NCBI RefSeq assembly: GCF_000143415.4
Contig: NW_003314358.1
Coordinates: forward strand, 1 to 6,268
DNA length: 6,268 nt
Direction: 5' to 3'
From: Selaginella moellendorffii
Lineage: Eukaryota > Plantae > Lycopodiophyta
Shown here: piece by piece, positions 3,821-4,254 of the stretch
Layout: every line of letters begins with the position of its first letter
Position numbering within the stretch: the stretch's first letter is position 1
Position numbers and translations under genes: made by a program
Notes under the pieces: generated by a model
Database searches by the model: none
What the model saw: the letters and a program-made list of their open reading frames with translations, nothing else
What the model was told of the DNA's origin: nothing

Positions 3821-4254
3821 ATGGATTGTCAAGTGTTCTTCATTTTAGTTCTTCTTGTTTGCGTGGGAGTTGTGATAGTGAATGGGGCTGATTGTTTTGG
3901 AAATCCCAATCCTGGCTATACTAATTACCAATATCAGCAAGCTGCTCGAAAAATTTGTTATGAGAGGCAATTTGATTACACTCTTGACTTAGGTAACTAT
4001 CCTAACAGCCAGTTCAGAAAGCAAATCCAAGCACATTTTGATGGCAATAGCAGACAGCATTGTGTGGTAATGTTTGTTTTAATATAATTCTTTATAGTTT
4101 ATATTTATGTGTTATGTTTATTTCTGTTTCAAATATTCAGGAAGCTTTCAACAATATTATTAACCAGTGTGTCCAGGGCCAAGGTAAAAATGGTGGCCGC
4201 TGGGATTGGAACTACAATGGCCAAGTTGAACACTATTATATTCAAGCTTTTTAA
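3821..4254 (+). CDS. Small secreted cysteine-containing protein, 119 aa, two exons (3821-4066, 4141-4254)
   Basis: ATG in a caaaATGG context. Hydrophobic signal peptide MDCQVFFILVLLVCVGVVIVNG|A. A phase-0 GT-AG intron joins ORFs 3812..4087 and 4060..4254 in frame, giving mature ADCFGNPNPGYTNYQYQQAARKICYERQFDYTLDLGNYPNSQFRKQIQAHFDGNSRQHCVEAFNNIINQCVQGQGKNGGRWDWNYNGQVEHYYIQAF*. Four mature Cys (25, 46, 81, 92); no disabling lesions; AATAAA just after the stop. Confidence 0.9.
4067..4140 (+). other. Spliceosomal intron, 74 nt, phase 0
   Basis: Donor GTG|GTAATG, very T/A-rich body, acceptor tattCAG|GAA. Removal restores one continuous ORF. Confidence 0.88.

Follow-up and report, generated by a model that had tools for sequence, protein, structure and literature searches.

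An expressed, unannotated gene of Selaginella moellendorffii for a predicted secreted four-cysteine protein with faint resemblance to LDL- and Y3-type fungal lectins

LDL of Lyophyllum decastes (alpha-galactosyl-binding; PDB 4NDS-4NDV) is a secreted 10-kDa homodimeric lectin, built from two helices packed against an antiparallel sheet of five strands (PMC8350385, PMC4425051). The same fold occurs in Y3 of Coprinus comatus (GBD_Y3, PF22803; PDB 5V6I) and in the plant DUF26/Gnk2 domains (PMC6368629), and also in KP4 (PMC13324453), and ginkbilobin-2 is named as a structural relative of LDL in a review table (PMC4425051). The LDL/Y3 group belongs to the KP4-like alpha/beta superfamily, which also contains plant DUF26/Gnk2; in a structural census of 2025, a cluster bearing the LDL family (PF21691) is placed in group 4 of the KP4 superfamily, and the plant members listed are moss KP4 and DUF26 proteins only (PMC12382754). 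The targets of KP4 (PF09044) are calcium channels or calcium gradients; LDL and Y3, in contrast, are lectins. The DUF26/Gnk2 domains are secreted plant domains, one member of which binds mannose and is antifungal; DUF26 proteins occur throughout land plants and are structurally near LDL and Y3, with one disulfide in common (PMC6368629). Mosses possess KP4 genes of fungal origin, according to the statements in PMC12382754 and PMC12513842 that cite Guan et al. 2023, and those of Physcomitrium patens were horizontally acquired.

Here we describe a two-exon gene at positions 3821-4254 (+) of a 6,268-nt stretch of DNA (the whole stretch analysed, hereafter called the window). The initial annotation had taken the host for a seed-free plant, and in agreement with this the window is identical (100%) to nucleotides 1-6268 of GL377662.1, a 669 kb scaffold of the S. 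moellendorffii assembly GCA_000143415.2; it matches positions 15904-9637 of the record that was fetched via the best protein match of the neighbouring gene. The gene lies 3.8-4.3 kb from the end of this scaffold, in AT-rich repeat-laden DNA. The GL377662.1 record has no gene called at 3821-4254, and a word-indexed search with exon 1 in a collection of 5.8 billion proteins returned no identical or near-identical protein; the word index also missed XP_024517741.1, a relative described below, and such a blank excludes identical or near-identical proteins only. With no gene call at the position and no near-identical protein in the collection, the four-cysteine gene is unannotated, and its nearness to the scaffold end may explain the absence of a gene model.

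The features of the gene are collected in Table 1. The intron contains 17.6% G+C, compared with 39% in the exons, and an in-frame stop stands upstream of the ATG, at 3749. The precursor has 119 residues and begins with a strongly hydrophobic N-terminus, MDCQVFFILVLLVCVGVVIVNG (mean Kyte-Doolittle value, 3.6), followed by V-N-G and then by ADCFG, the predicted start of the mature protein. The residues at -1 and -3 of the predicted cleavage site are small, and the predicted signal peptide, which is conserved in the paralogues, carries two further cysteines. The mature part would be ~97 residues long with a mass of ~11 kDa, and its four cysteines, Cys25, Cys46, Cys81 and Cys92 of the precursor, give the spacing C-x20-C-x34-C-x10-C. 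Upstream of the gene, the TATA-like hexamer could possibly serve as a core promoter. The translation and the splice joint confirm the intact gene, the signal-peptide-like N-terminus, the clean 74-nt intron and the four cysteines that the initial annotation had claimed, and the mature N-terminus and the cysteine spacing are as it had read them.

Table 1 Features of the four-cysteine gene and its immediate surroundings (window coordinates)
Feature	Positions	Strand	Description
TATA-like hexamer TATAAA	3709..3714	+	pattern search; ~110 nt upstream of the ATG
Exon 1, coding part	3821..4066	+	ATG at 3821, 82 codons (translation)
Exon 1, content	3821..4066	+	signal peptide, then mature residues 1-60; Cys25, Cys46, Cys81
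Exon 1, support	3821..4066	+	covered by spliced RNA contigs
Predicted signal peptide	3821..3886	+	22 residues; cleavage after VNG, site inferred
Intron	4067..4140	+	74 nt, GT..AG, phase 0; starts GTAATG, ends TTCAG
Exon 2, coding part	4141..4254	+	37 codons and TAA (translation)
Exon 2, content	4141..4254	+	helix-like segment with Cys92, then conserved tail GGRWDWxxNGQxEHYxxQAF
AATAAA polyadenylation-type signal	4268..4273	+	pattern search; 14 nt past the stop codon

Parts of the window were found in 18 public sequencing runs from nine studies, nearly all labelled as one organism. Four of these runs were aligned to positions 1500-6268 of the window: three of RNA type, namely X7 and X8 (organism A) and X9 (organism B), and the DNA run X1. 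Contigs of all three RNA-type runs contain the splice joint 4065>4140, which skips 74 nt with GT..AG ends and may equally be cut one nucleotide further, as 4066/4141, at the predicted exon ends. The shorter side of the contigs carrying this joint is 120-158 nt long. The joint is absent from the DNA run, where a 931-nt contig spans 3529-4298 unbroken. Because contigs lacking the intron occur in the three RNA-type runs and in the DNA run there is none, the predicted intron is removed in vivo; the RNA label of the runs was itself a guess, and the same distribution of intron-less contigs bears it out.

Over ~320-360 aligned positions, 6-9 letters of the spliced contigs depart from those of the window (97.5-98% identity), and in the contig of X7 the coding part aligns with the window without gaps. 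Since the identity is 97.5-98% and not 100%, what is expressed is a near-identical allele or accession and not strictly this copy. We rejected the paralogue as a source of these contigs, its DNA being only 71-81% identical. Two other contigs (730 and 512 nt) match positions 3811-3919 alone and then diverge into letters encoding SVQQYQQAAQ, which is the paralogue. The RNA contigs start at 3811-3842 and stop at 4259-4297, and as contigs they cannot show where the transcript starts.

The four-cysteine gene had been described as the only lesion-free gene of the window, which is wrong, because SELMODRAFT_427973 is annotated at 4782-5904 (-). This neighbour encodes 317 aa without a Pfam domain and belongs to a family found in S. 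moellendorffii only; the open reading frame at 4785-5363 (-) matches only hypothetical proteins of S. moellendorffii, with 89%, 62% and 52% identity. RNA contigs of ~1.37 kb match SELMODRAFT_427973 at ~86%, with 107 other letters in place of 5378-5533, and this degree of match indicates that the expressed copy is a paralogue of SELMODRAFT_427973 and not necessarily the copy in the window. On the other side of the four-cysteine gene, at 3485-3556 (-), there is a marginal tRNA, called Leu(CAG) by ARAGORN with several stem pairs mismatched and scoring 29.5 bits against the Rfam cut-off of 29 in a small-region scan only. The DNA run covers it ~20-30x as deeply as the neighbouring gene, and it hence has the look of a degenerate copy from a repeated tRNA gene or tRNA-derived element. 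The segments at 2931-3248 and 5952-6268 are very high-copy AT-rich repeats, with a summed contig depth in X1 of 10,000-65,000 compared with 10-20 over the gene, and their layout is MITE-like or satellite-like; within positions 3025-3199 there are a direct repeat of 74 nt with 84% identity and an inverted repeat of 30 nt, 93% of it complementary. At 1939-2421 there are fragments with 85-90% similarity to transcribed sequences (0.6-1.5 kb) of the RNA runs. In the contigs matching them, the loose ends read like pentatricopeptide-repeat text, which makes the pentatricopeptide-repeat flank proposed by the initial annotation plausible, but Pfam gave no match to pieces of open reading frames from the flank, which looks decayed.

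A phmmer search with exon 1 against 1.84 billion representative proteins found one cluster of true relatives, represented by XP_024517741.1 (E 7.6e-30, 68% identity). This is an 'uncharacterized protein' of S. moellendorffii with 113 aa, encoded by LOC112341589 on scaffold GL377651.1, and the same 90% cluster also holds XP_024533407.1 (LOC112347184, scaffold GL377585.1), which has 119 aa and is intact. Neither locus was found named in the literature searched. The output of the search further contained a 1890-aa protein, which matched residues 17-36 of exon 1 only, in four stretches, and was set aside as a short repeated motif. Also discarded was a weak tblastn match of exon 2 to positions 4764-4868 of the GL377662.1 locus record, inside an unrelated 165-aa open reading frame.

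Like the window gene, both paralogues have the signal peptide, the four cysteines and the intron position, and XP_024533407.1 has the same length of 119 aa; unlike it, they possess annotated gene models, lie on GL377585.1 and GL377651.1, and have an intron of 48 nt at the position where the window gene has one of 74 nt. The translations of the window exons align with XP_024533407.1 without gaps and with all four cysteines conserved, the identity being 68% in exon 1 and 78% in exon 2. A kinesin gene adjoins the paralogue on both GL377651.1 and GL377585.1 (0.8- and 2.3-Mb scaffolds), and the flanks of the two are 90-98% identical, a pattern suggesting that LOC112341589 and LOC112347184 are two haplotype copies of one locus, of which one would be broken or mis-assembled. 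The DNA of XP_024517741.1 aligns to the window across both exons. The window and LOC112347184 both have 12 nt after CAGGGC in exon 2 for which LOC112341589 on GL377651.1 has 19 nt instead, and part of these 19 nt is a duplicate of a 17-nt stretch found a little further downstream (5295-5415 of the fetched locus record). This net gain of 7 nt puts the annotated tail of XP_024517741.1 out of frame, and the conserved tail, GGRWDWVFNGQLEHYHLQAF, sits in another frame; the frameshift reflects a genuine lesion of recent date or else a mistake in the assembly. In the same locus record, a run of 100 N at 4788-4887 lies ~110 nt upstream of the start codon, so the promoter region of LOC112341589 is incomplete in the assembly.

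Between the window locus and the paralogue, dS is 0.7-0.9, which points to an apparently old duplication, and dN/dS is 0.30 in exon 1 and 0.17 in exon 2. The tail that is out of frame in XP_024517741.1 has a dN/dS of 0.13 all the same, indicating that the full-length form is the one selected. As far as sequence comparison reaches, the family consists of two loci, detected in S. moellendorffii only and evolving under purifying selection, and the window gene is the third gene copy and the second locus of this Selaginella-restricted, uncharacterised family.

We then compared the family with known domains in Pfam scans to E 10, in which the intact paralogue XP_024533407.1 served as a stand-in for the window product, as it did in the fold analyses. 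No Pfam family other than LDL (PF21691; model of 76 positions, gathering cut-off of 27 bits) was matched by two or more of the sequences, and LDL is the best match for each. Window exon 2 alone matches model positions 44-64 (E 0.033, 14.7 bits) and the exon 2 open reading frame of the window (64 aa) positions 38-64 (E 0.023, 15.2 bits). XP_024517741.1 matches positions 25-56 at full length (E 3.5e-4, 21.0 bits) and 6-54 with residues 23-97 (E 2.5e-4, 21.5 bits), and the mature part of XP_024533407.1 matches 25-63 (E 1.4e-4, 22.3 bits). Every query scores below the 27-bit cut-off for membership. The registers of the matches agree, and combined they cover most of the 76 positions (6-64); the three matching sequences are not independent evidence, because they are related to one another. 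The mature part of XP_024533407.1 also faintly matches PF18647, a model of alpha-galactosyl-binding fungal lectins (E 0.12), and a match of XP_024517741.1 residues 23-97 to DUF4567 (E 0.21) was taken as chance.

A search by language-model features with residues 23-97 of XP_024517741.1 gave clusters from Ascomycota only, consisting of proteins of 68-128 aa, some of them named secreted, and several of these neighbour clusters carry LDL or GBD_Y3. Their scores were 0.79-0.85, and scores below 0.9 are rated by the tool as a lead only. Exon 1 alone, used as a query for the ESM Atlas features, gave no usable match. The initial annotation had called the protein fungal-like, of the KP4/Y3 type. What stands of this proposal is the set of sub-cut-off LDL matches and the Ascomycota neighbours with LDL or GBD_Y3, whereas KP4 (PF09044) matched neither the window exons nor XP_024517741.1 nor XP_024533407.1 in Pfam at E<=10, Hce2/Ecp2 (PF14856) gave no Pfam match at E<=10, and GBD_Y3, without a Pfam match at E<=10, appears among the language-model neighbours only. 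The fungal-like resemblance, as read from the sequences, seems to be weak but consistent.

Among PDB sequences, searches with both exons, the two paralogue proteins and two profiles did not reach LDL, Y3, KP4 or Gnk2; the LDL chains of PDB 4NDS and 4NDV were found by neither phmmer nor the family profiles at E<=10. The top rows of these searches (heparanase, HGF kringle, tachylectin-2 and a calcium ATPase peptide; E 0.006-2) were taken as chance. AlphaFold2 gave an all-helical model of low confidence for residues 23-113 of XP_024517741.1 (pLDDT 64.8) and, with a four-row alignment, another low-confidence model for residues 23-119 of XP_024533407.1 (pLDDT 57.5), which has helices at 13-26, 42-49 and 56-70 and a hairpin at 80-93. 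Foldseek against the PDB and a wide fold search with the latter model returned only unrelated rows with low Z.

Set beside the described systems, the Selaginella protein resembles LDL in that its sequence predicts a small, secreted single domain of about 10 kDa, probably stabilised by disulfides, and the order of elements in the low-confidence model (a helix, a central region, a cysteine-bracketed helix and a C-terminal hairpin) may be compatible with the two helices and five strands of LDL. It differs from LDL in its score below the cut-off, in the absence of a match to the LDL chains in the PDB and in its host, a plant and not a fungus. The likeness to Y3 consists of the language-model neighbours. 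The horizontally acquired moss genes encode KP4 proteins, which are likewise small, secreted, disulfide-bonded alpha/beta proteins, but the Selaginella proteins have neither a Pfam KP4 match nor a phylogeny linking them to fungal KP4. DUF26 is characterised by C-x8-C-x2-C and three disulfides, whereas the Selaginella protein has the spacing C-x20-C-x34-C-x10-C and no match to PF01657.

On balance we lean towards the reading that this expressed, unannotated S. moellendorffii gene encodes a secreted protein from what is most likely a remote branch of the LDL/Y3 group with, by analogy, a glycan-binding role in the apoplast; a known superfamily would then probably gain a new, divergent member in a host group new to it. 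The resemblance to LDL would be accidental if the gene encoded a secreted cysteine-rich peptide born within the Selaginella lineage, acting for example in signalling or in the cell wall. All of the LDL matches are indeed sub-threshold, no PDB sequence matched, the fold searches with the low-confidence model gave nothing, and there are just two loci in one species; but chance is an unlikely source of an E-value of 1.4e-4 in an hmmscan of all Pfam, the LDL match spans most of the domain in a consistent register, the separate embedding search gives the same families, and the size, signal peptide and four-cysteine layout match those of the fungal clusters, and we regard a peptide of this kind as rather unlikely. 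More improbable still is a very divergent offshoot of plant DUF26 (Gnk2-type) proteins that has lost C-x8-C-x2-C. The structural nearness of DUF26 to LDL and Y3, the shared disulfide and its presence throughout land plants (PMC6368629) would suit such a descent, but the scans to E<=10 found no PF01657 match, the motif is absent and the exhaustive exon 1 search found no DUF26 protein. An artefact, be it contaminating fungal DNA, a chimera at the scaffold end or a pseudogene in decay, might be suspected from the position of the unannotated gene near a scaffold end in AT-rich repeat-laden DNA and from the frameshift in one haplotype copy of the paralogue. Against this, a contig of an independent DNA run covers 3529-4298 contiguously (~96% identity), nine studies of the same organism have runs that contain parts of the stretch, the neighbouring gene is specific to Selaginella, the paralogue is embedded in scaffolds of 0.8 and 2.3 Mb next to a kinesin gene, and the gene has an open frame, a spliced transcript and a dN/dS of 0.17-0.30. 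Plant DNA beside a Selaginella-only gene, with a paralogue beside a kinesin gene on a 2.3-Mb scaffold, is not a contaminant; on the DNA contig, the occurrence in nine studies, the Selaginella-only flank and the context of the paralogue, contamination and chimerism were rejected, and an artefact of any of these kinds is hardly credible.

Whether the family came from a fungus is a separate matter, compatible with the LDL/Y3 reading that we favour. A Selaginella ancestor may have gained it from a fungus, with the intron, the duplication and retention following, a scenario that we hold as a tentative possibility. At E<=0.001, the exon 1 search of 1.84 billion representatives found no plant homologue outside S. 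moellendorffii; resemblance at the family level is to fungal lectin families only, the nearest language-model clusters are all from Ascomycota, and the KP4 genes of mosses, as reported in the statements of PMC12382754 and PMC12513842, provide a precedent. On the other hand, the same search found no significantly similar fungal protein at E<=0.001 either, and a metagenome scan with the family alignment gave 114 pattern matches, of which none was confirmed. Neither of the two thus yielded the significant fungal similarity and the nested tree by which a transfer from fungi would be recognised: since no fungal sequence is significantly similar, there is no donor and no tree. The exhaustive search covered exon 1 only, lycophyte transcriptomes are possibly poorly represented in the libraries, and the LDL fold is shared by DUF26, which leaves room for a vertical plant origin. 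That no plant homologue was found outside Selaginella would fit a transfer without proving it; these observations agree either with a family of foreign descent that diverged long ago or with one that evolves fast and is confined to its lineage. The plant-type intron at a conserved position and the ordinary Selaginella scaffolds imply that any transfer predates the duplication (dS ~0.7-0.9). The more specific account, in which a lycophyte captured a fungal LDL/Y3-type lectin gene, added a plant intron and a signal peptide, duplicated it and retained it through purifying selection as a glycan-binding defence protein of the apoplast, is slightly more doubtful again.

If the family is a distant LDL/Y3 branch, as we favour, the precursor would enter the secretory pathway, as its hydrophobic signal peptide predicts, and the peptide would be cut after Gly22. 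The four cysteines would pair into two disulfides; between Cys81 and Cys92 lies a segment that is helical in both low-confidence models, and these two would probably pin it to Cys25 and Cys46. Once in the apoplast, the mature domain of ~11 kDa would, judging from LDL, Y3 and Gnk2, most likely bind a glycan, whether of a microbe or feeder or of the cell wall, and would serve in defence or recognition. An effect on ion fluxes like that of KP4, or a part in signalling, is possible instead of a lectin function.

The reference annotation of a model lycophyte gains a missing gene, and the reading of its paralogue is corrected, the annotated C-terminus being out of frame. The work also defines a small, constrained, species-restricted family of predicted secreted proteins whose sole detectable kin are fungal lectins. 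Fungal lectin and KP4 genes are already on record as having passed into seed-free plants, and in this respect the present finding is modest. If the gene is indeed a captured LDL-type lectin gene, it would give plants their first lectin family of the LDL type, beyond the dozen plant lectin families that are recognised, and would be a second independent move, after moss KP4, of the KP4-like superfamily from fungi to seed-free plants. Should both the LDL-type fold and the fungal origin hold, the product would be a compact candidate for antifungal or anti-feeder activity, and the traffic of the KP4 superfamily that is known between fungi and early land plants would extend to vascular plants and to its lectin branch.
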